From Paramoeba atlantica (taxonomy: Eukaryota; Protista; Discosea), in assembly GCA_977017575.1 (NCBI GenBank), contig CDRNVI010000108.1:1-29143 (forward strand): a DNA stretch of 29,143 nt, given 5' to 3'. The stretch's first letter is position 1; every line of letters begins with the position of its first letter. The position numbers were made by a program, and so were the translations under genes. Below are positions 15,235 through 29,143 of this stretch, one piece after another. The notes under the pieces are model-generated. The model had not been told where the DNA came from. It saw only the letters and a program-made list of their open reading frames with translations, and ran no database searches.

Positions 15235-16104
15235 ATGATTAATAAATTTAAACATTTTCATTTTTGACATATTGTAACAATTAGTCCATGACCTTTATTA
15301 TTATCTATGTTTGCATTATCAATGCCAGTAGGTTTAGTAACTTTTTTTCAAGGATTTTATTATGGTGTACCTGTATTTTTTATAGGTTTAATTATGGTAA
15401 TATTTATTATATGTTTATGATTTAGAGATATAGTAATTGAAGCAAGTTATGAAGGTCATCATACTAAACAAGTTCAATCAAGCTTAATTATAAGCTTTTT
15501 ACTTTTTATTTTTTCAGAAGTAATGCTTTTTGTAGCTTTTTTCTGAGCTTTTTTTCATTCAAGTATTTTTCCTACAGTAGAATTAAATTGTAGTTGACCT
15601 CCCGTAGGAATGAGTGAAATAATTATGGATCCTTTTGGTATTCCTTTATTAAATACTTTATTATTATTAACATCAGGTGCTACTTTAACTTTAGCACATT
15701 TATATTTAAAACAAGGATATATGGATAAATGTTTATTAACTATGGTTGTTACAATTGTATTTGCTGTATTATTTTTATCTTTTCAGTTTTATGAATATAG
15801 TGTTTCTGCTTTTGATATTTCAGATGGTGTTTATGGTTCAACTTTTTTTTGTTGTACTGGTTTACATGGTTTTCACGTTATTGTTGGTACTATAGCTTTA
15901 AGTATGACTACTTATCGTATATATTTATCACATTTTTCACGTAATCACCATTTAGGTTTTGAATTTGCAGCTTGATATTGACATTTTGTTGATGTAGTAT
16001 GATTATTTTTATATATGATTATATATTGTTGAGGTAGTGATATGGTAGCTCCTCTTATATTAGAATTAAAAGATGGAAAAGAGAATATTTTTTATTTAGT
16101 ATAA
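15235..16104 (+). CDS. cox3: Cytochrome c oxidase subunit 3 (289 aa)
   Basis: HIVTISPWP, EGHHT, FSEVMLF..FFWAFFH, TGLHGFHV and WYWHFVDVVW motifs; TAA at 16102-16104. Confidence 0.97.
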
Positions 16105-16111
16105 ATTTACA

Positions 16112-17774
<1,663 letters not shown>

Positions 17775-17790
17775 TAATTTTACTAATATA

Positions 17791-17864
17791 ATCCCTCTGG
17801 TCTAATTGGTTAAGACATATCACTCATAATGGTACTGATATAGGTTCAAGTCCTATGGGGGATA
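17791..17864 (+). tRNA. tRNA with CAT anticodon: Ile2-type (lysidine) or elongator Met
   Basis: Cloverleaf; acceptor ATCCCTC/GGGGGAT, loop CTCATAA. C3-C4-C5 and the D-arm resemble tRNA-Ile2, and ATA codons are abundant, but identity is unresolved. Confidence 0.9.
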
Positions 17865-17865
17865 A

Positions 17866-17937
17866 ATAGTTGTAGTGTAGTGGTTAACATATTAGTCTTC
17901 AAAACTAATGACATAGGTTCAAATCCTATCAACTGTG
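17866..17937 (+). tRNA. trnW: tRNA-Trp(UCA)
   Basis: Cloverleaf with loop CTTCAAA; independently confirms TGA=Trp. Confidence 0.95.
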
Positions 17938-17969
17938 TTAATTATAGATGATATAATTAAATATAATAA

Positions 17970-18041
17970 AATAGGGTGACTGAAAGGTAAAGTATTGTTT
18001 TTTGGCAGCAAATCGTGTAGGTTCGAGTCCTACTCCTAAGT
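17970..18041 (+). tRNA. trnQ: tRNA-Gln(UUG)
   Basis: Loop TTTTGGC, T-arm GTAGG-TTCGAGT-CCTAC; acceptor pairs 1 and 2 mismatched. Confidence 0.88.
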
Positions 18042-18054
18042 ATTAAAATTTTTT

Positions 18055-18127
18055 TTAAGGATAGTATAAATGGTTATTATAATTGATTGCAAATCTATAG
18101 ATATCGGTTCGAGTCCGTTTCCTAACT
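18055..18127 (+). tRNA. trnC: tRNA-Cys(GCA)
   Basis: Loop TTGCAAA, U73 discriminator; acceptor pairs 1 and 3 mismatched. Confidence 0.88.
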
Positions 18128-18154
18128 TTTTTAAATTTAATATAAATATAATAA

Positions 18155-18227
18155 ATACCTATAGTTTAATTGGTTAAAACATGCATTTGATAAGTGCAAA
18201 TTGATAGTTCGAGTCTATCTGGGGTTA
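18155..18227 (+). tRNA. trnI: tRNA-Ile(GAU)
   Basis: Loop TTGATAA; acceptor pairs 2 and 3 mismatched. Confidence 0.92.
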
Positions 18228-18236
18228 TAAATAAAA

Positions 18237-18309
18237 AAATAGTTAGCTCAATTGGTAGAGCATCGGCCTTTTAAGCTGAGGGTTATAGGTTCGAGCCCTA
18301 TACTATCTA
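18237..18309 (+). tRNA. trnK: tRNA-Lys(UUU)
   Basis: Loop CTTTTAA; acceptor pair 2 is A:C. Confidence 0.93.
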
Positions 18310-18315
18310 TAAAAA

Positions 18316-18388
18316 TATGGAATGGTGTAATAGGTTAGCACATCGAGTTGTGATTTCGATAGTATGAGTTCAAGTCTCATTTCTTACC
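18316..18388 (+). tRNA. trnH: tRNA-His(GUG)
   Basis: Loop TTGTGAT, C73 discriminator; acceptor pairs 1-3 mismatched; G-1 not encoded. Confidence 0.92.
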
Positions 18389-18454
18389 TAAATTAAGAAT
18401 AATAAAATTAATAAAATATATATTTTATTAAAATTTTTTTATTAATTTGTAAAG

Positions 18455-18528
18455 ATAGATGTGATGGAATTGGTAGACATATTAGTTTTAGGCACTAAAT
18501 TTTAGGGGTTCGAGTCCCCTCATCTGTA
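18455..18528 (+). tRNA. trnL: tRNA-Leu(UAG), short variable loop
   Basis: Leu-type D-arm ATGGAATTGGTAGACAT, loop TTTAGGC, variable region of only 5 nt. Confidence 0.9.
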
Positions 18529-18562
18529 TTGTATGTATAAAAAAAGAAAAAATATTTTTTAT

Positions 18563-18633
18563 AAGGATGTAGTTTAAAGGTAAAATATCTATTTTGGGTG
18601 TAGACGTTATAGGTTCAAATCCTATCGTCCTGA
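18563..18633 (+). tRNA. trnP: tRNA-Pro(UGG)
   Basis: Loop TTTGGGT; acceptor pair 1 is A:G (canonical Pro is C1-G72). Confidence 0.93.
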
Positions 18634-18646
18634 TAATTATAATAAC

Positions 18647-18720
18647 AAGGAGGTAGCTTAATAGGCTAAAGCTTTAACCTGTCGAGTTAAAAGATGAGGG
18701 TTCGAATCCCTTCCTCCGCA
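18647..18720 (+). tRNA. trnD: tRNA-Asp(GUC)
   Basis: Loop CTGTCGA; acceptor pairs 1 and 2 mismatched. Confidence 0.9.
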
Positions 18721-19020
18721 TAAAATATAATAAAATATGTTTATTTTATTACTATATAATCAAGATGTTTTGTATATAAAATATAAAATATTATCTATTA
18801 TATCTATTATATCAATTTATGATAAATGTACATTTACCATATGAAATAACAGTCATAAAACATACATATTTTACTTAAAATTTTTTTAAAAAGAGAAAAA
18901 ATTATAAAATAAATAATTATAGTAATTTAAAAGATTTTATTTTTTTAATAAAATAAAAAATTAGTAAATTAATATGATTATTTATTTTAGATATATCTTA
19001 CTTTAATAATATATGATTTA

Positions 19021-19092
19021 TTTTTCTTCGTCTAATGGTTAGGACATTGCTCTTTCACAGCAGAAATAAGGGTTCAAATCCCTTAGAAATGA
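19021..19092 (+). tRNA. trnE: tRNA-Glu(UUC)
   Basis: Glu-type TCGTCTAATGGTTAGGAC D-arm, loop CTTTCAC; pair 2 is T:T and pair 1 is T-G. Confidence 0.92.
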
Positions 19093-19193
19093 AATTATTT
19101 TATCCGTATTAATTTAATTTAATAAAATTTTTTTGTAAATTTTTGAAATCTATTATACACTGATTTAAGTATATTATTTGTCACATATAATAA

Positions 19194-19245
19194 GGGGGGT
19201 TTGGGGGGTTTGTATAAGAGATAATATTTTATTTTCATATACAAA
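19194..19245 (+). promoter_or_regulatory. G6-TTT-G6 tract followed by a hairpin; candidate control or replication element
   Basis: The only long G tracts in the AT-rich mitochondrial spacers. Followed directly by TTTGTATA...TATACAAA arms with further inner pairing. Function is inferred. Confidence 0.35.
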
Positions 19246-19266
19246 AATTTTTATTAATTATTTTTT

Positions 19267-19349
19267 AATGGTGTGATGGAATTGGTAAACATGATAGACT
19301 TAAAATCTATTGCCTTTTAGGCTTGAGGGTTCGAGTCCCTCCTCCAATA
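19267..19349 (+). tRNA. trnL: tRNA-Leu(UAA)
   Basis: Loop CTTAAAA, long variable arm TGCCTTTTAGGCTT; pair 2 is A:A and pair 6 is T:T. Confidence 0.92.
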
Positions 19350-19367
19350 ACGATGAGTTAATTATTT

Positions 19368-19440
19368 TTTAAGATGGAGTAATAGGTTAACTCAGTGGTC
19401 TCATGAGCCACAGATGTAGGTTCGAGTCCTACTCTTCTTA
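19368..19440 (+). tRNA. trnM: Initiator tRNA-Met(CAU)
   Basis: GGAGT...ACTC D-stem with A11-U24 (initiator hallmark), loop CTCATGA; acceptor pairs 1-3 mismatched. Confidence 0.88.
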
Positions 19441-19539
19441 TATAATTACGTAAATATTATTATGGATTACATTTGAATATGTAATCAATTTTGAATTTTT
19501 ATTAATTAGTAAAATATATGTATAAAAATATTTTCGAAA

Positions 19540-19779
19540 ATGGCAGGACAAGAAATTATGTTAATTTTTGCAAAAAAAGTAGGTGCTGGTTTAGCTACTA
19601 TAGGTTTAGCAGGTGCTGGAGTAGGTATAGGAATAGTTTTTGGAGCTTTTTTAATTGCTTATTCACGTAATACTACAATTAAAAACGATTTATTTGGTTA
19701 TACTTTATTAGGTTTCGCATTAACAGAAGCAATTGCTCTGTTTGCCCTAATGATGGCTTTCTTAATCTTATATACTTAA
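19540..19779 (+). CDS. atp9: ATP synthase subunit c
   Basis: [21 protein letters not shown] and [12 protein letters not shown] (proton-carrying Glu) motifs. Confidence 0.97.
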
Positions 19780-19806
19780 TCAACCTATTTTTGTTGTTTT
19801 GTATTT

Positions 19807-19880
19807 AATTGGTTAGTTTAATTGGTTAAAATTATGATCTTCTAAATCATTAGATATAGGTTCGAGTCCTATACCAATTA
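19807..19880 (+). tRNA. trnR: tRNA-Arg(UCU)
   Basis: Loop CTTCTAA; fully Watson-Crick acceptor AATTGGT/ACCAATT. Confidence 0.94.
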
Positions 19881-19888
19881 TAATTTTT

Positions 19889-19969
19889 TATAGTGTGGCT
19901 GAGCGGTAAAGCGGTAGACTGTAAATCTATTGTATTTATACATCGTAGGTTCGAATCCTACCACTTCCA
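19889..19969 (+). tRNA. trnY: tRNA-Tyr(GUA)
   Basis: Loop CTGTAAA, long variable arm. The 5' strand TATAGTG faces CACTTCC, so pairs 1-3 are mismatched. Confidence 0.94.
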
Positions 19970-20029
19970 TTTGATTAAAATATATAATAATGTTGAATAA
20001 TTTTTAAACAAATCATTTTAAAATTTTTT

Positions 20030-21025
20030 TATAAATTTAAAATAGTATTAAACGGATATCTTGCCAATAATAAGTTTATAGACGTTTTAAAACGTAATGT
20101 GAAAGTAAAATAATAATAATTTTTCAATATTCACGTATCTAAAGGGAAAACCCAATTAAATTAAATAATTAAAGAATATCTAATGAATTGAATCATCTTA
20201 GTAATTAGTTAAAAAAATAAAAATGATATTATTAGTAGTGGCGAGCGAAAATAAAATAGCTAAATTAAACAATAATATAAATAAAAAATATAATAATTTG
20301 GAATAATTAACAAAATAAGTAATAGTCTTGTTATTTTTTATTATTATTATTGGTTTTGAGTAAAATAAAAACTAAATTTGTTTGAAGATTAGAGTACCAT
20401 CTCTAAAGGCTAAAGAATTATTATTGAGCGATAGTGAAAAAGTACTGTGAAGGAAAGATGAAAAGAAATTTTTTAAAAATGTTGAAATAGATTTTGAAAT
20501 TTAATACTAAATAGCACTTTAAGCATAAATAATTATATGTTAAAAGGTACCTTTTGCATAATGGGTCAGTGAGTTAATTATTGTAGCAAAATAAAAAATT
20601 ATTAAATTTTTTAATTGTAATTAATATATTTATAGTTATAATAATTAGACCCGAAACCAAGTGATCTAGTCATGGGCAGATTGAAGTTAATTAAATATTA
20701 ATGGAGGATCGAACCCGTTTATGTTGCAATATATTGGGATGACCTATGATTAGGGGTGAAAGGCTAATCAAACTTGGAGATAGCTGGTTTTCTACGAAAT
20801 CTATTTAAGTAGAGATGAAATTTAAATTTATATAAGGTAGAGCTACCATATTGGGTTGTTGAATCCATATGAACTTCAAATAAATATAAAGTAAAAATTT
20901 TAATTTCGATATATGGCGAAAAGGTTGTATATCAAGAGGGAAAGAGCCCAGATTATAAATTAAGGTTTCTAAATTAATATTAAGTTAAAAAGTATATTAT
21001 AATATTAACAATGAATAGGAGGTAG

Positions 21026-21059
<34 letters not shown>

Positions 21060-22800
21060 CAGCTCACTATTGATAGATATTTATATACAAAAATATAACG
21101 AAAATAAATATTATACCGAAATTATAAAATATTATTTAAAATAATAATATTGGTAGTAGAACGTTTTATAAAAGAAAAAAAAAATTGTTAAATTATAAAA
21201 TTAAAATTGAATATACTGGCATAAGTAGCAAAAATAATGTTATAAACATTATCATCTAAAAATCTAAGGTTTCTAATGTCAAGATAAACTGCATTAGGTT
21301 AATCGGTCCCTAAAATGAATATGATAGTAATAATTGAAGGGTAGTTAAAGAGTTATAAGGATAACATAATATTTTTAACGTTATTAGTAGATGACAGTTT
21401 ATTTTTTAAATATTTTAGGATCAAATTTTAATAAATATAGTAAAACATTGTGTGATATATTCGAATATATTGATTGAAATATTTAAAAAATAAATTCAAG
21501 AAAGAATACTAATATATAAAACCGTACTAAATCCTACACAGGAGGATTAGTAGAGAATACTAAGATGAATAATTGAATAATATCGAAGGAACTCGGCAAA
21601 TTAACTCTGTAACTTCGGGAGAAAGAGTATTTTTATATATACATTATATGTATATAAAAATGTAACAGAATAGAGGATGGCGACTGTTTAACAAAAACAC
21701 AGGACTTTGCAAAATTAATTAATGATGTATAAGGTCTGACACCTGCCCGGTGCTATAAAGGTAATTGTTATTGTTAATATATTATTTAATGTATTAGCTT
21801 TATATAGAATGAATAGTAAACGGCAGCTGTAAATATAACGGTTCGAAGGTAGCGAAATTCCTTGTCGAGTAAGTTTCGACCTTGCATGAATGGTGTAACG
21901 ACTATCCTACTGTCTCCGGTATTATATTAGCGAAATTGAATTCTCTGTGCAGATGCAGCGTATTAATAGCTAGACGGAAAGACCCTATGCACCTTTACTG
22001 CAGTTATATTTTGTTATTAAAAATTAAATTTATAGGATACAAACTAATCGTTTTAAAATTTTAATATTAGTTAATTGTTTAGATAATCTTGGAATAGTTT
22101 GAATTTAATTTTTAAAATTTAATAATTTTTTATTGACAGAATATATTTGGTAGTTTCTCTGGGGCGGAGACCTCATAAAATGTAACTGAGGTGTACAAAG
22201 GTAATTAAAATTTTATTAGAAAATTTTGGCGTGTAATGGCTAAAAATTACTTAACTGTGAGATTTACAAATCAAACAGAGATCTTTTTTATTAAAAAGGT
22301 CGGTCATAGTGATCCAATATAATTGAATGGAAAATATATTGCTCAACGGATAAAAGGTACGCTAGGGATAACAGGCTTATGACTCCGGAGAGAAGATATC
22401 GACGGGGTTGTTTGGCACCTCGATGTCGATTGGTCACATCCTGGTTAAGAAAAATGTTCCAAGGGTAAGGCTGTTCGCCTTTTAAAGTGGCACCTGAATT
22501 GGGTTCAGAACGTCGTGAGACAGTTCGGTTCCTATCTACTATTAATTAATTAAAATTGAAGGAATCTTATCTTAGTACGAAAGGACTGGAGAAGGAATAT
22601 CACTGGTAAATCGGTTGTAATTATAATTGCATAGTCGAGTAGCTAAATATTAATAATATAATTATTGAATTCAATCAGATATAAGAAGATTATCCTAAAA
22701 TATTTTAAAAGTATTGATTGTAAAAGATTATTACGAAATTAAGTTATGTGTGTAAGTCCTGTGAAGGATTGAGCTAAATAATTTTAAGAATCAATCTAAT
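20030..22800 (+). rRNA. rnl: Mitochondrial large-subunit rRNA, no intron seen; ends approximate
   Basis: Conserved cores: GAAAAGTACTGTGAAGGAAAG, GACCCGAAACCAAGTGATCTA, AAGGTAGCGAAATTCCTTGTC, GACGGAAAGACCC, GGGATAACAGGCT, CACCTCGATGTCG, AGAACGTCGTGAGACAGTTCGG, sarcin-ricin loop AGTACGAAAGGAC. Confidence 0.96.
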
Positions 22801-22804
22801 TTAT

Positions 22805-22832
22805 AAAAAGAAAAAAGAAAAAAGAAAAAAAA
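22805..22832 (+). repeat. Short (A6G)n purine tract after the LSU rRNA
   Basis: AAAAAG AAAAAAG AAAAAAG AAAAAAAA. Confidence 0.6.
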
Positions 22833-22929
22833 TTTCTATATAAGAAAAAATAAAATATATAATATTTTGAAAATATTATATGTAATAAAACAACAAACTT
22901 TAAATTAAAGTTTGTAATTTGTAAAACAA

Positions 22930-23002
22930 TACTTGGTAGTTTCAATGGTAAAATAATTGGCTGTTAACCAATCAGATGTAGGTTCGAATCCTGCCCAGGT
23001 CG
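22930..23002 (+). tRNA. trnN: tRNA-Asn(GUU)
   Basis: Loop CTGTTAA, G73 discriminator; pair 1 is T:C. Confidence 0.93.
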
Positions 23003-23017
23003 TTGTATAAAAAATAA

Positions 23018-23106
23018 GTTTATGTGGCTGAGTGGTTTAAAGTAATCCTCTTGAAAAGGATCGTATAATTTTAATTATACCGTGGGTTCGAATCCCACCA
23101 TAATCT
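23018..23106 (+). tRNA. trnS: tRNA-Ser(UGA)
   Basis: Loop CTTGAAA, long variable arm; pair 2 is T:T. Confidence 0.93.
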
Positions 23107-23167
23107 TAATATAAAAAAAAAGGAAAAAATTTATGTAAATTATATAATATATAATATATTATATATA

Positions 23168-23727
23168 AATACTTGTATGTTTTATTCTGGCTTTGAGTAA
23201 ATGCTAGTAGTTCGCTTAACACATGCTAGTCAATTAAAATTTAAAATTTAAAATTAATGGCGTAAGGGTGAGTAATATATAAAAACGGGACTTATAATTA
23301 TGTTTATATTATAAACTGGTTTATAAAGATTTAGGTAGTTGGAGGTGTAATAGACTAACAAGCCGATAATTCTTAGTTGATCTTAGAAGGAGGTACAACC
23401 ACATTGGGAATGAGAAAAGGCCCAAGTTCCATTAGGAGGCAGCAGTGAGGAATATTGAACAATGAGCGAAAGCTTGATTCAGCGAAACTACCTGAATTAT
23501 GACAATTTATTGAAAAATTCTTGTTTAAGTGAGCATAATGAGGTTAAACTTAAGAATAAGCATCGACTAACTTCGTGCCAGCAGTCGCGGTGATACGGAG
23601 GATGCGGGTGTTACTCAGCATTACTGGGCGTAAAGCGTATGATAAGTGGTTTATTTTTTAATAATATAATTTTAAAGGCGTTATTAGTAATAATGAATAA
23701 ATTATATATTAGTAAACTAAGAGTAGT
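23168..23727 (+). rRNA. rns: Mitochondrial small-subunit rRNA, 5' portion only, truncated at the junction
   Basis: CTTAACACATGCTAGTC, GGAGGCAGCAGTGAGGAATATTG, GTGCCAGCAGTCGCGGTGATAC and TACTGGGCGTAAAGCG; stops near E. coli-equivalent position ~660. Confidence 0.94.
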
Positions 23728-24592
23728 TTGGAAGAACATGGGATCGGTAGACCATCAACCTATGCATCGATCATTTCTACACTGCAAGCACGTGAATACG
23801 TACAACTTGATAATAAACGATTTACACCTACTGATGTGGGTCGCGTAGTCGCTAAATTCCTCACCACGTACTTTACCAATTATGTAGAATATAATTTTAC
23901 TGCGCGCATGGAAGATGCTTTAGATGAAATTGCACGTGGCGAAAAAGAATGGTTACCGTTAATGGATGAATTTTGGGAGCGCTTTAAGCAGCGCATTGAT
24001 GAAATTAATCAGACGGTCAAACGCAGTGATGTGACCCAAGAAAAACTCGATGAGAATTGTCCGAAATGTAGTAAACCATTATCCATTCGTTTGGGACGAC
24101 GTGGTCGCTTTATTGGTTGCACTGGTTATCCTGATTGTGATTACACACGCAATTTAGACGGTGACGATAATCAAGAACAAGTAGAAGCCGTTGAAGGACG
24201 TCAATGTCCTGAATGCCAACAAACATTAGTCATCAAAACGGGTCGTTATAGTAAATTCATCGGCTGCAGCAATTACCCTGAATGTAACTTCACTGAACCA
24301 TTAGAAAAAACCAAAAGACACTGAAATAGCATGTCCTAAGTGCAAAAAAGGTAATATATTAGAGCGTAAATCACGACGTGGTAAGATCTTTTATTCATGT
24401 GCCTGCTACCCTAATTGCGAATATGCATTATGGGATCCACCAATAGCAACACCATGCCCTAATTGTGAGTGGCCTATTTTAACGATTAAAACCACGAAGC
24501 GTAGAGGTCGTGAAATACTATGCCCACAACAGAACTGTAATTACCGTGAAGCCTATGAAGAAGATACAACGACTACTGATGGCTCCAAATAA
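23728..24592 (+). CDS. topA: Bacterial DNA topoisomerase I, C-terminal part (5' lost at junction), with a +1 frameshift in the A6 run at 24305-24310
   Basis: LEEHGIGRPSTYASII, FTARMEDALDEIA and repeated C4 zinc ribbons (CPKC...FIGCTGYPDC). After removing one A the frame continues PKDTEIACPKCKKG...CPNCEW...CPQQNC to TAA at 24590-24592. Confidence 0.93.
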
Positions 24593-24637
24593 TAAATTGT
24601 TAACTGCTTCCATTAACTATATAGATAAGATTGCAAC

Positions 24638-25192
24638 ATGTTAGATCAACAGTATATTGATCAAGCTGCATTACTATTACAACAGGGTGGAGTGATTGCT
24701 TACCCGACAGAAGGTGTGTACGGTTTAGGCTGCGATCCATTTAATCAAGTCGCCTGGCAACGTATCCTAGATATTAAACAACGTCCAGCAAACAAAGCAT
24801 TCATTGTGGTTGCCAGTGAATTTGCACAAATTGATAATATCATTGATACCTCTGCTGTTACTGATCTAGATTACATCATGACAACTTGGCCCGGCCCTGT
24901 TACTTGGATATTTCCATTGTCTGAAAAGGGACGTACACTATTGCTGCCAGGATTAACTTCATTAGCAGTACGGATTAGCGCACATCCTATTATCAAAACA
25001 GTATGTGAACAGTTTGCAAAACCGATAACATCAACCAGTGCGAATGTGGCGAATCAAACTCCGTTAACCGATTATGATGATGTCGTTACACAATTTGGTA
25101 AACAGGTTGATTTAGTCATCCCAGGAAATATTGACAATCATATTGGCCCGACACCAATATACGACGCGATAACAAAGGAAAAAATACGGTAG
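24638..25192 (+). CDS. tsaC: L-threonylcarbamoyladenylate synthase (YrdC/Sua5 family)
   Basis: GGVIAYPTEGVYGLGCDP, IKQRPANKAFI, LAVRISAHP and ITSTSAN motifs. Confidence 0.93.
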   Translation: MLDQQYIDQAALLLQQGGVIAYPTEGVYGLGCDPFNQVAWQRILDIKQRPANKAFIVVASEFAQIDNIIDTSAVTDLDYIMTTWPGPVTWIFPLSEKGRTLLLPGLTSLAVRISAHPIIKTVCEQFAKPITSTSANVANQTPLTDYDDVVTQFGKQVDLVIPGNIDNHIGPTPIYDAITKEKIR

Positions 25193-26116
<924 letters not shown>

Positions 26117-26148
26117 CACACTGTAATGTTCAGGAAAACAGGATAGCA

Positions 26149-26155
26149 AGGAGGT
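26149..26155 (+). promoter_or_regulatory. Shine-Dalgarno site for the hydrolase gene
   Basis: AGGAGGT ending 3 nt before the ATG at 26159. Confidence 0.7.
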
Positions 26156-26158
26156 AAC

Positions 26159-26881
26159 ATGCAAACACAATTGATTGAATACACACATACGGATACCACA
26201 TTAGAAGGCTTCTGTGCAGTTGATGCCACGCATGGTAAACAACAGCCATTGGTACTAGTTGCACATGCATGGGGTGGACGTGATCAATTTGCCTGTGATC
26301 AAGCACGTGCATTAGCTAAACTAGGATATGTCGGCTTTGCTATCGATATGTTTGGTAAAGGTGTATTAGGTAATAGTCGTGAACAAAACACACAATTAAT
26401 TGCCCCCTTTATCGAAGACCGACAATTCTTATTAGCACGTTTACAAGCTGGATTAGAGGCAGCTAAACAATTACCTTTTGTCGATCAACAACGTGTTGCT
26501 GCGATTGGATTTTGTTTTGGCGGATTATGCGTACTTGACTTAGCGCGTAGCGGAACAGCCATTAATGGTATTGTTAGTTTTCATGGTTTATTAAATGCGC
26601 CAGACAATGCGAGTCGCAATAATAACATTTCAGCAAAAGTACTGGTGTTACACGGTTATGATGATCCCATGGCAACTCCAGACCAAGTCATAACATTTTG
26701 TCAAGAAATGACGGCTACCAAAGCTGATTGGCAATCGCATGCCTATGGCAATACCATGCATGCCTTCACCAAGCCCGATGCAAACGACCCAGATTTTGGT
26801 ACGGTCTACAACGAATTGGCTAATCAACGTGCCTGGTTGGCGATGCAAAACTTCCTCACTGAGCTATTTACCACCTTATAG
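26159..26881 (+). CDS. Dienelactone hydrolase family alpha/beta hydrolase
   Basis: Nucleophile elbow IGFCFGG, SFHG, HGYDDP and catalytic-His motif TMHAFT. Confidence 0.92.
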   Translation: MQTQLIEYTHTDTTLEGFCAVDATHGKQQPLVLVAHAWGGRDQFACDQARALAKLGYVGFAIDMFGKGVLGNSREQNTQLIAPFIEDRQFLLARLQAGLEAAKQLPFVDQQRVAAIGFCFGGLCVLDLARSGTAINGIVSFHGLLNAPDNASRNNNISAKVLVLHGYDDPMATPDQVITFCQEMTATKADWQSHAYGNTMHAFTKPDANDPDFGTVYNELANQRAWLAMQNFLTELFTTL

Positions 26882-27352
26882 GGAATAAAACTAAGGAAAA
26901 ATTTTATTTTTCAGGTCAATTCAATCAGTTACAACAAGCTGAATATTGGCAATAAATTGGCCGACCAACTACACTTATAGGTAAGCGGTATTGTGTTATT
27001 GGTTATGCTATTTTGCGGCAACAAATGCACACTAAAAATTATAAGAAAAACATCTACATTTATTACACTCAATAAAAAATCATCAAATCTGCTAAATCGC
27101 AGCATTGGGGGTTTTATACATTTTTTTAATGCCCTTAAAACGGGTACACCGATGTTTTTCTTACTATCTCCCATAACACATAAACTGCTTATTTGTATAA
27201 ATAAATGATAATAAATAAATAACATTTTTGGCAGTTACATATTAGGGGTTATGCAATTAGTTAAATAATAATATTTGATTATTAACCAAATCTACTGAAT
27301 TATTATATCCCTAAATGCCGTTATGTAACCTGCACTATTAAGGTGGCAGCAG

Positions 27353-27895
27353 ATGGCATTACGTGTCCAGCAAACAAAAAAGAAATCCGCACTGGGATCA
27401 GCTGTATCAAAATGGCTGAGGTCTACGCATGATCTATTGTCACAATTAAGAAGTGTACGTTTTGGTGCTTACGCTCCTGTTGGCAGCAGTCTTGGTTACA
27501 ACACTATGCTCATTATTGGTGAAGCCATCATTGGTGGGATCTCTATTACTTATAGTACCCCAACATTGGCCACAGAATACCAAGACATGTTACATCGTCA
27601 CAAAAAAATTGATGAAGAATTTATACAATACCGAAAACTTAGTATTAATGATGGTGTAACCACACTTGAATTGGAACAGTATAAAAATTTCTTTGATGAA
27701 CAATTCTTATTGTTACACGAATTTGATGAGAATCTATTTGATTATTATGAAGCTGATTTAGACTCAGATACAAAAGGCGATGATGAACCTAGAGAACCCG
27801 AAATAATAAATGATCCACCAGTAACACCACCAATGCCTGAGATACCCGCACCTGAACCTGAACCAGAACCTGAGCCTGAGCCCGAGCCCGAGCCT

Positions 27896-27936
<41 letters not shown>

Positions 27937-29143
27937 TGAGCCTGAACCAGAACCTGAGCCTCAACCACCTACCGTAGACTTAAGTACCAATAGTGCTGGC
28001 ACCAGCTACTCTACCACATTTACTGAAGATACCAGTACAGTGGCATTAAACGATGGAACATTAAGTATTACTGATAGCGATAGCACGACATTAACATCTG
28101 CCACAATAAGGATTACTAACTTACTTGATACAAATGCTGAAATATTAGCAATCAATACGACTGGCACTAACATAGTAAGCAATTATGATACTAACACGGG
28201 CATCATGGAGCTAACTGGCACAGATACACTTGCCAATTATGAAACCGTATTAAAAACTTTAACGTATGAAAATAACTCAAATACGCCTAATACCACTAGC
28301 CGTACCATTGACATTAGTATTAGTGATGGCACTAATAGCACGGTTGCAACTGCAACCGTTAACATTACCCCAGCAAACGATATTTCCATAATTGATTTAA
28401 ATGGTGCAAGCACAGGCGGCACCAATTACACTACCACATTCGTAGAAAAAGGTGGTGCTATTACGATTACTGATAGCAATATCGCGATTACCGATCCAGA
28501 CAATACATCATTGCAATCTGCTGAAATTTCTATTACTAATATTTTAAATGCCGGTGAAGAAATATTAGCAACCGATACCACTGGCACTAATATTACTGCT
28601 AATTACAATAGCACTACTGGCGTATTATTATTAACTGGCAATGACTCAATCGATAATTATGTTAGTGTCATTCGACAAATCACTTTCGATTTAACATCGA
28701 ACAATCCTAATACAACACAAGATCGTATTATTGAATTTGTTGTCAACGACGGTGATGACAACAGTGCTACCGCGACTACAACCGTGACCATGAACGCTGT
28801 CAACGATGCACCCGTATTTGACCTCGATGGCTCTACCGGCGGTGTCGACTTCTCAACATCCTTCACTGAAGACGGGGGCGCAGTCAGCATCGTGGATACT
28901 GATTCCACCCTAACCGACGTTGATGATACCCATATTGAATCAGCTACCATTACCATCACTAACCAACTCGATGGCACCGACGAAACCTTAAACTTCGATA
29001 CCACGGGCACTAATATCACTGGCAACTATAACGCTGGCACTGGCGTACTAACGCTATCAGGCTCCGATGAACTCGCGGATTACTTAACTGTATTAAGCAC
29101 CATTACCTATAACAACACTAGCCAAAACCCAAACACCACGGCG
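27353..29143 (+). CDS. Large repetitive surface or secreted adhesin-like protein, N-terminal 597 aa (runs off the window; absent from the ORF track)
   Basis: Stop-free from ATG 27353 to the window end. N-terminal domain, acidic segment, (PE)18 linker, then about 142-aa Thr/Asp/Asn-rich Ig/cadherin-like repeats ([10 protein letters not shown]...FTEDGG...SATITITN...TGVLTLSG...TY.N.S..P). Confidence 0.88.
27851..27958 (+). repeat. Coding 6-nt tandem repeat, (CCN GAR)18 encoding (Pro-Glu)18
   Basis: 18 PE units counted; perfect CCAGAA x6 core at 27899-27934. Confidence 0.95.
27965..29143 (+). repeat. Three degenerate ~426-nt (142-aa) domain repeats, the third incomplete
   Basis: Boundary AAC GAT (ND) at 28376 and 28802, 426 nt apart; shared ACTGGCACTAA(T/C)AT (TGTNI) in each unit. 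Confidence 0.85.

Follow-up and report, generated by a model that had tools for sequence, protein, structure and literature searches.

Genes of the window and registers of the tRNAs

The window, meaning the whole stretch of 29,143 nucleotides analysed here, is mitochondrial: its G+C content is about 20%, it contains a tRNA with the anticodon UCA, and both rnl and rns are present. Genes of the cob, nad, atp, cox and rps series are found as well, and, cox1 excepted, every protein gene has an open frame in code 4. The atp1 fragment obtained with code 11 had no exact match on look-up, and the code-4 atp1 product is on record. The contig is not an error-free assembly. From about position 23725 the DNA is bacterial, the mitochondrial rns being joined to a fragment of bacterial topA in a chimeric contig, and one indel, an extra G at 16334, splits cox1. 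This mitochondrial DNA is present in three further assemblies, which show 0 substitutions relative to the window over the 4.5–6.5 kb adjoining the tRNA cluster, and we therefore consider base miscalls unlikely. All or part of the stretch is present, as Logan contigs, in 21 sequencing runs; half or more of its sampled words occur in at least 7 runs, which come from 3 studies, six of these runs having fractions of 0.91–0.98.

With ARAGORN 17 tRNA genes were found between 17791 and 23107, all of them on the + strand, and all 17 pass the gathering score of the Rfam tRNA family. The genes do not overlap, at least 1 nt lies between each gene and its neighbour, and the nearest neighbours in the cluster are spaced by 1 to about 30 nt. 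For each tRNA the register of the acceptor stem was anchored on the T-loop (positions 54–60, followed by 61–65, 66–72 and 73) and on U8. The Rfam covariance-model alignments begin at the same position 1, save for tRNA-Gln, tRNA-His, the second tRNA-Met (Met2) and tRNA-Tyr, whose alignments begin at model positions 3–5 and give this position 1 when projected back. Since the coordinates of the Rfam model give the same position 1, the registers are independently supported, and ARAGORN, T-loop anchoring and the Rfam model are concordant. The genes, with the 5′ changes predicted from the 3′ strand, are as follows.

17791–17864, + strand: tRNA-Met(CAU) no. 1; 7 of 7 acceptor pairs formed, no predicted edit
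17866–17937, + strand: tRNA-Trp(UCA), reading UGA (code 4); fully paired; G73
17970–18041, + strand: tRNA-Gln(UUG); pairs 1 (A-G) and 2 (A-A) mismatched; predicted A1C, A2U; Rfam match from model position 3
18055–18127, + strand: tRNA-Cys(GCA); pairs 1 and 3 mismatched; predicted U1G, A3U; U73
18155–18227, + strand: tRNA-Ile(GAU); pairs 2 and 3 mismatched; predicted U2A, A3C
18237–18309, + strand: tRNA-Lys(UUU); pair 2 (A-C) mismatched; predicted A2G
18316–18388, + strand: tRNA-His(GUG); pairs 1–3 mismatched; predicted U1G, A2U, U3A; C73, −1 G not encoded; Rfam match from model position 5
18455–18528, + strand: tRNA-Leu(UAG); fully paired
18563–18633, + strand: tRNA-Pro(UGG); pair 1 (A-G) mismatched; predicted A1C, giving C1-G72 with A73
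18647–18720, + strand: tRNA-Asp(GUC); pairs 1 and 2 mismatched; predicted A1G, A2C
19021–19092, + strand: tRNA-Glu(UUC); pair 2 U-U, predicted U2A; pair 1 U-G
19267–19349, + strand: tRNA-Leu(UAA); pair 2 A-A, predicted A2U; 6-67 U-U, the sole mismatch outside pairs 1–3
19368–19440, + strand: tRNA-Met(CAU) no. 2 (Met2), putative initiator; pairs 1–3 mismatched; predicted U2A, U3G, possibly U1A; Rfam match from model position 4
19807–19880, + strand: tRNA-Arg(UCU); fully paired
19889–19969, + strand: tRNA-Tyr(GUA); pairs 1–3 mismatched; predicted U1G, A2G, U3A
22930–23002, + strand: tRNA-Asn(GUU); pair 1 U-C, predicted U1G; G73
23018–23106, + strand: tRNA-Ser(UGA); pair 2 U-U, predicted U2A

For tRNA-Glu a fully paired, non-canonical register shifted by −2 was rejected, as it has 4 letters, not 2, between the acceptor and D stems.

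Mismatch positions and strand asymmetry

Counted over the 17 tRNAs, the mismatches at acceptor positions 1 to 7 number 8, 10, 5, 0, 0, 1 and 0. A first-pass annotation of this DNA had given 23 of 51 pairs as non-pairing at positions 1–3 against 1 of 68 at positions 4–7, and these counts were reproduced exactly (Fisher p = 1.6e-9). Its statement that 13 of the 17 tRNAs are mismatched at pairs 1–3 was likewise obtained with the T-loop-anchored registers, and every mismatch and repair that it listed (Gln, Cys, Ile, Lys, His, Pro, Asp, Glu, Leu-UAA, Met2, Tyr, Asn and Ser) was recovered. The signature had been called genome-wide, which holds for the mitochondrial tRNAs on the contig and has to be narrowed to the part of the mitochondrial genome that the contig contains. 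The contents of the cluster at 17970–23106 were given correctly; its start has to be moved, the fully paired tRNA-Met(CAU) at 17791 and tRNA-Trp(UCA) at 17866 lying just upstream. With the predicted repairs the summed minimum free energy (MFE), -246 kcal/mol for the genomic letters, falls to -297.5 kcal/mol, and a complete acceptor stem of 7 bp appears in the MFE fold of 9 of the 13 tRNAs.

The two strands of the acceptor stem differ at these positions. The G+C content of the 17 tRNAs is 10% for the 5′ letters 1–3 and 39% for the 3′ letters 70–72, compared with 50% and 53% for the two strands at positions 4–7. Where the 3′ letter is a C, which needs a 5′ G, the pair is formed in 3 of 11 cases. 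Altogether 28 of the 51 pairs at positions 1–3 are formed versus 21.1 ± 3.2 with shuffled partners, which is slightly above chance (p about 0.02). The 3′ strand bears the expected identity letters, namely C73 in tRNA-His, U73 in tRNA-Cys and G73 in tRNA-Asn and tRNA-Trp. This asymmetry points indirectly to replacement of the 5′ strand, for which the 3′ strand would serve as template.

Related mitochondrial genomes

The closest named relative as judged by atp1 is the amoebozoan Paramoeba pemaquidensis, with 80% identity. Its mitochondrial genome (KX611830, PMC5601477) has the gene block nad2-orf-rps4-atp1-cox2-cox3-cox1 in common with the window; the order of the tRNA genes and the individual mismatch sites differ. 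In six related mitochondrial loci, for which the registers were picked by best pairing at positions 4–7, a choice that slightly favours the pattern, the affected tRNAs number 15/19, 9/9, 11/15, 15/18, 14/16 and 13/18, and the mismatches are confined to pairs 1–3 save for one at position 5 in a single locus (L006). One of the six, the locus encoding exactly the atp1 protein of P. pemaquidensis, has mismatches at pairs 1–3 in 15 of 19 tRNAs and none at pairs 4–7.

Comparing orthologous tRNAs, we find an identity of 0.36 for the 5′ letters 1–3, versus 0.38 expected from composition, and of 0.43 for the 3′ letters 70–72, versus 0.28 expected. tRNA-Tyr has the same 3′ strand as its P. pemaquidensis counterpart and different 5′ letters, and G72/A73 is present in tRNA-Pro of all 5 genomes carrying it. 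The mature ends predicted from the 3′ strand agree between genomes in spite of differing genomic 5′ letters: GUA with C73 is common to tRNA-His of four genomes, CAG to tRNA-Pro of three genomes, one of which encodes CAG directly, and AAC to tRNA-Ile of three genomes.

The genome paper of P. pemaquidensis and its supplement text (PMC5601477), in the parts available to us, describe 20 tRNA genes without mention of editing. A literature search found no text tying tRNA editing to Paramoeba, Neoparamoeba or Vannella; subscription papers on Vannella mitochondrial genomes were outside its scope, so that an earlier prediction may exist there.

Predicted 5′ editing, its alternatives and known systems

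We consider it very probable, judging from the DNA, that these are functional tRNA genes of Paramoeba-related amoebozoan mitochondria whose transcripts need 5′ editing by trimming and subsequent 3′-5′ refilling with a Thg1-like polymerase. What we infer is an RNA editing process with the following order of steps. The 5′ leader would be removed first from the tRNA transcript, and then up to three 5′-terminal nucleotides unable to pair with positions 70–72 would be taken off. The 5′ end would be refilled in the 3′-5′ direction with the 3′ strand as template by a Thg1-like polymerase, which by analogy with DdiTLP3 in Dictyostelium may be a nucleus-encoded protein targeted to the mitochondrion. 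Because repair would hide mutations at gene positions 1–3, these may have drifted to the A+T bias of the genome and now be close to unconstrained. tRNA-His probably receives a templated G-1 in addition, since C73 is present and the −1 G is not encoded.

Such mismatches could also be tolerated, frayed or effectively 4-bp acceptor stems working unrepaired as in some degenerate animal mitochondrial tRNAs, and the intact pairs 4–7 and remaining cloverleaf would fit this. Tolerated degeneration is, however, expected to hit both strands and other stems, and here it is seen only in the 5′ letters 1–3, with letters 70–72 richer in G+C and conserved above chance. The 1-72 pair is normally required by aminoacyl-tRNA synthetases and for CCA addition, and the three consecutive mismatches in tRNA-His, tRNA-Tyr and Met2 would abolish it, so that we regard tolerance as very unlikely. 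The mismatches alone are silent on which strand changes, and one may thus think of editing of the 3′ strand on a 5′ template, as in the 3′ tRNA editing of centipedes. However, the conserved letters lie on the 3′ side and include the identity letters of tRNA-Pro, tRNA-His, tRNA-Cys, tRNA-Asn and tRNA-Trp given above, and 5′-templated ends such as UAU in tRNA-His and tRNA-Tyr are common to no orthologue. Overlapping tRNA genes with missing or wrong 3′ acceptor letters, by which animal 3′ editing is recognised, were not found in the window, its tRNA genes being separate. Editing of the 3′ strand is therefore hardly credible.

An artefact, be it miscalls, a nuclear or dead copy of mitochondrial DNA or wrong tRNA boundaries, is suggested by the rns-topA join and the broken cox1. 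Against this stand the agreement with three assemblies alongside the cluster, the recurrence of the stretch's words in runs of 3 studies, the otherwise open protein genes, the concordant registers and the same pattern in six other genomes; moreover, random errors would not be limited to positions 1–3 of the 5′ strand. We give this explanation practically no weight. Trimming and rebuilding of the 5′ end might be carried out by an enzyme which is not Thg1-like, or might act on all tRNAs regardless of mismatch. The chance-level orthologue identity of the 5′ letters fits constitutive replacement; the pairing at positions 1–3, being still somewhat above chance, speaks against it. As to the enzyme, Thg1-like proteins do the repair step in both amoebozoans studied, DdiTLP3 in vivo (PMC5041481) and AcaTLP1 and AcaTLP2 in vitro (PMC4284800), and we judge this variant very unlikely as well. 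A wider form of the preferred 5′ editing would be that across Paramoeba-related marine amoebae the machinery removes nucleotides 1–3 from practically all mitochondrial tRNAs, paired or not, and builds them anew. This would follow from positions 1–3 being at mutational equilibrium, with an orthologue identity equal to that expected by chance from composition and a G+C content of 10%. It seems rather doubtful to us; if true, it would be a case of fully ratcheted constructive neutral evolution, and tRNA-His would need four consecutive templated additions including G-1.

The assignment to 5′ editing of the kind known from Acanthamoeba, slime moulds and chytrids, templated by the 3′ strand, had already been made in the first-pass annotation and is well supported, as regards the template strand indirectly: the mismatches lie at pairs 1–3 (6-67 of tRNA-Leu(UAA) apart), the 5′ letters are drifted and unconserved, the 3′ letters are conserved, and six relatives are alike. 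Its suggestion that edits to pyrimidines might be new finds no support, since according to the review PMC4284800 5′ editing installs any of the four nucleotides. As to the lineage, the organism is an amoebozoan near Paramoeba and belongs to the supergroup in which the editing was discovered. The mechanism is well established in Amoebozoa (PMC4284800, PMC5041481), and the present case adds a further example of it. Our understanding of the editing mechanism itself is left unchanged.

The mitochondria of Acanthamoeba castellanii (Lonergan & Gray 1993; Price & Gray 1999; reviewed in PMC4284800), likewise an amoebozoan reading UGA as Trp, have mismatches confined to pairs 1–3 in 12 of 15 tRNAs compared with 13 of 17 here. 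In A. castellanii the repair uses the 3′ strand as template and can introduce any nucleotide, whereas the editing here is predicted from DNA alone; the present genome, from a marine Paramoeba relative, is more A+T-rich and has its own set of tRNAs and sites. Mitochondrial 5′ editing occurs also in Polysphondylium pallidum and in Dictyostelium discoideum, in which the same mismatch signature affects 10 of 18 tRNAs, DdiTLP3 does the repair and DdiTLP2 adds G-1 to the mitochondrial tRNA-His (PMC5041481); the tRNA-His of the window would need the same extra addition. Chytrid and monoblepharid fungi (Spizellomyces, Harpochytrium, Monoblepharella; Laforest et al. 2004, cited in PMC4284800) show this 5′ signature at three positions too, and the mechanism is presumed to be the same. 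They belong to a supergroup different from that of the amoebozoan described here. Spizellomyces mitochondria also decode UAG as Leu; a tRNA with a CUA anticodon was not found in the window.

The list of organisms for which 5′ tRNA editing is predicted would gain a marine amoebozoan and, by comparison, a clade of related mitochondrial genomes, at least six in number, to which P. pemaquidensis belongs. Strand asymmetry together with chance-level 5′ conservation offers a way of inferring the edited strand from DNA only, and the same measures show how far repair would have freed positions 1–3 from selection. When such genomes are annotated, tRNA finders should be expected to shift the boundaries of these genes or to score them low. 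At positions 1–3 there are three G-U pairs here, and whether G-U is edited varies by species.

Unpaired acceptor-stem ends

Seventeen mitochondrial tRNA genes on the + strand (17791-23107) were found with ARAGORN, and all 17 score above the Rfam tRNA threshold. ARAGORN at times misplaces stem ends where there are mismatches, so we used the T-loop to fix positions 66-73, and the pairing at positions 4-7 together with U8 to fix position 1. Position 1 anchored in this way is consistent with the Rfam alignments, and the local alignments of the tRNAs for Gln, His, Tyr and of the second tRNA-Met(CAU), the putative initiator, begin at model positions 3-5, as unpaired ends predict. The mismatch counts along positions 1-7 of the acceptor stem are 8, 10, 5, 0, 0, 1 and 0, that is 23 non-pairs among 51 at positions 1-3 (pairs 1-72, 2-71 and 3-70), distributed over 13 tRNAs, versus 1 among 68 at positions 4-7 (Fisher p = 1.6e-9). 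The first-pass annotation had claimed 23 mismatch sites in 13 tRNAs as a signature of 5′ editing and had predicted each repair with the 3′ strand as template; with the T-loop-anchored registers we could reproduce the sites and every repair in full. The predicted replacements comprise A to C (4), A to U (4), U to G (5), U to A (7) and A to G (3). When they are applied, the summed MFE falls from -246 to -297.5 kcal/mol, and the MFE folds of 9 of the 13 affected tRNAs then show all 7 acceptor pairs.

The 5′ letters 1-3 have a G+C content of 10%, resembling non-coding mitochondrial DNA, versus 39% for their 3′ partners 70-72; at positions 4-7 the two strands have 50% and 53%. Where the 3′ letter is C, a pair is formed in just 3 of 11 cases, and the 28 pairs formed among the 51 at positions 1-3 are barely above the number obtained with shuffled partners (21.1 +/- 3.2).

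Comparison with related mitochondrial genomes

Six related mitochondrial loci (L004-L009) were retrieved through atp1, and all of them have the same mismatch profile as the window, with a single mismatch in 380 pairs at positions 4-7. In L004 (2261-16347), which encodes exactly the atp1 of Paramoeba pemaquidensis, pairs 1-3 are mismatched in 15 of 19 tRNAs and pairs 4-7 in none.

Acceptor-stem mismatches in the six related loci (positions 1, 2, 3)
L004: 12, 4, 7
L005: 3, 6, 5
L006: 8, 7, 5
L007: 10, 12, 9
L008: 10, 8, 1
L009: 9, 6, 5

Between tRNAs of the same anticodon the 5′ letters 1-3 are identical at a frequency of 0.36 versus 0.38 expected from composition, whereas the 3′ letters 70-72 reach 0.43 versus 0.28 expected. 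The predicted mature ends recur across genomes despite differing genes: tRNA-His is predicted to start with GUA, together with C73, in four genomes whose gene letters read tat, gaa, tta and caa; tRNA-Pro is predicted to start with CAG in three genomes, one of which encodes CAG outright; and tRNA-Ile is predicted to start with AAC in three genomes. The window and P. pemaquidensis have an identical 3′ strand in tRNA-Tyr. Established synthetase identity letters of bacterial-type systems are kept on the 3′ side as well: G72/A73 in Pro, U73 in Cys, C73 in His and G73 in Asn and Trp.

Proposed replacement of the 5′ letters and its precedents

The composition and the conservation of the letters fit a replacement of the 5′ letters on the 3′ strand as template. 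Editing of the 3′ strand and a simple tolerance of the mismatches were considered as well, and both are improbable given the composition and conservation of the 5′ versus the 3′ letters. In the established model of 5′ editing a nuclease removes the mismatched 5′ nucleotides and a Thg1-like protein (TLP) then fills the gap in the 3′-5′ direction with Watson-Crick templating (PMC4284800, PMC5041481). By analogy, the mismatched 5′ nucleotides of the window's tRNAs would be removed in the same way and refilled 3′-5′ by a TLP on the 3′ template. In Dictyostelium discoideum DdiTLP3 does the refilling in vivo and DdiTLP2 adds G-1 to the mitochondrial tRNA-His (PMC5041481). In the tRNA-His gene of the window, position 73 is C and an A stands upstream of position 1; a templated addition of G-1 probably takes place here too.

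The signature equals that of Acanthamoeba (12 of 15 tRNAs), Dictyostelium (10 of 18 tRNAs) and the chytrids in every feature testable on DNA. The suggestion that edits to pyrimidines might be new is contradicted by a review according to which 5′ editing can put in each of the four nucleotides (PMC4284800). Among the searchable papers, which do not include those on Vannella mitochondrial genomes, none connects Paramoeba or its relatives with tRNA editing, and the lineage is new only insofar as this holds; the P. pemaquidensis genome paper and the searchable part of its supplement (PMC5601477) do not mention tRNA editing. The signature was correctly recognised, and it represents a known phenomenon in an additional member of the expected supergroup. 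Modest added value comes from the asymmetry between the strands and from 5′ letters that have drifted to chance level across the clade.

The contig and its host

The contig is mitochondrial from position 1 to about 23700 (G+C roughly 13-30%), with all genes on the + strand. Genes were read with code 4, UGA being read as Trp because a tRNA with the anticodon UCA is present; Pfam matches support only some of the names and the rest are our reading of the translations.

Gene order of the contig
+ strand, first part: cob (partial), ORF, nad3-like, 250-aa ORF, nad4L, nad5, nad6, nad11, nad1
+ strand, next part: nad4, nad2, ORF, rps4, atp1, cox2, cox3, cox1
+ strand, after cox1: tRNA cluster, atp9, rnl, 2 further tRNAs, start of rns
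about 23725 to 29143: bacterial topoisomerase I, C-terminal portion (Pfam profile positions 333-410 of 411, and zinc ribbons), Sua5/YrdC protein, coproporphyrinogen III oxidase, dienelactone hydrolase

The mitochondrial rns stops after about 550 nt and its remainder is absent from the contig; the Rfam match of 485 nt at 23169-23653, which spans the whole 1533-position bacterial SSU model, is a local and gapped one to this truncated 5′ part. At about 23725 there is an abrupt switch to DNA of 40% G+C, and since bacterial genes follow, the contig is chimeric at its 3′ end. The junction looks like an assembly misjoin, though the bacterial DNA may be a real insertion; the tRNA region is not affected. 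The window's set at 17791-23107 lacks tRNA genes for Ala, Gly, Val, Thr, Phe and Ser(GCU), and the single Arg tRNA gene has the anticodon UCU. The absent genes may be located in genome sequence that the contig does not cover, or the tRNAs may be imported.

Three other assemblies of the same mitochondrial DNA (one Logan contig and two from ENA) show no substitution relative to the window, and 2-4 indel bases, in the 4.5-6.5 kb that adjoin the tRNA cluster. Compared with these, the window has an extra G at 16334 which splits cox1 into the ORFs 16112-16366 and 16338-17774; in the other assemblies cox1 is intact with 553 residues, and the extra G probably reflects an error in the window's consensus. 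At least seven runs from three studies contain half or more of the words sampled from the stretch (six of them at 0.91-0.98); these runs may include the source sample and are therefore not fully independent.

The atp1 product of the window is also recorded in four other contigs. Its best named relative is that of P. pemaquidensis (80% identity), alongside dozens of environmental sequences at 75-87%, and the block nad2-orf-rps4-atp1-cox2-cox3-cox1 is common to the window, P. pemaquidensis and the other relatives compared. From the atp1 relative and the common gene block we infer that the mitochondrion belongs to an uncultured amoebozoan near Paramoeba. The ENA assembly ERZ24894578 contains both the window's mitochondrial genome (L002, ctg2721l) and the contig with the exact P. 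pemaquidensis atp1 (L004, ctg2963c), and the sample therefore has at least two different amoebae. In the related locus L006 the gene pair of tRNA-Lys and tRNA-Ile is tandemly duplicated (15796-15974 and 16483-16662), and the compared acceptor-stem letters of the two copies are identical.
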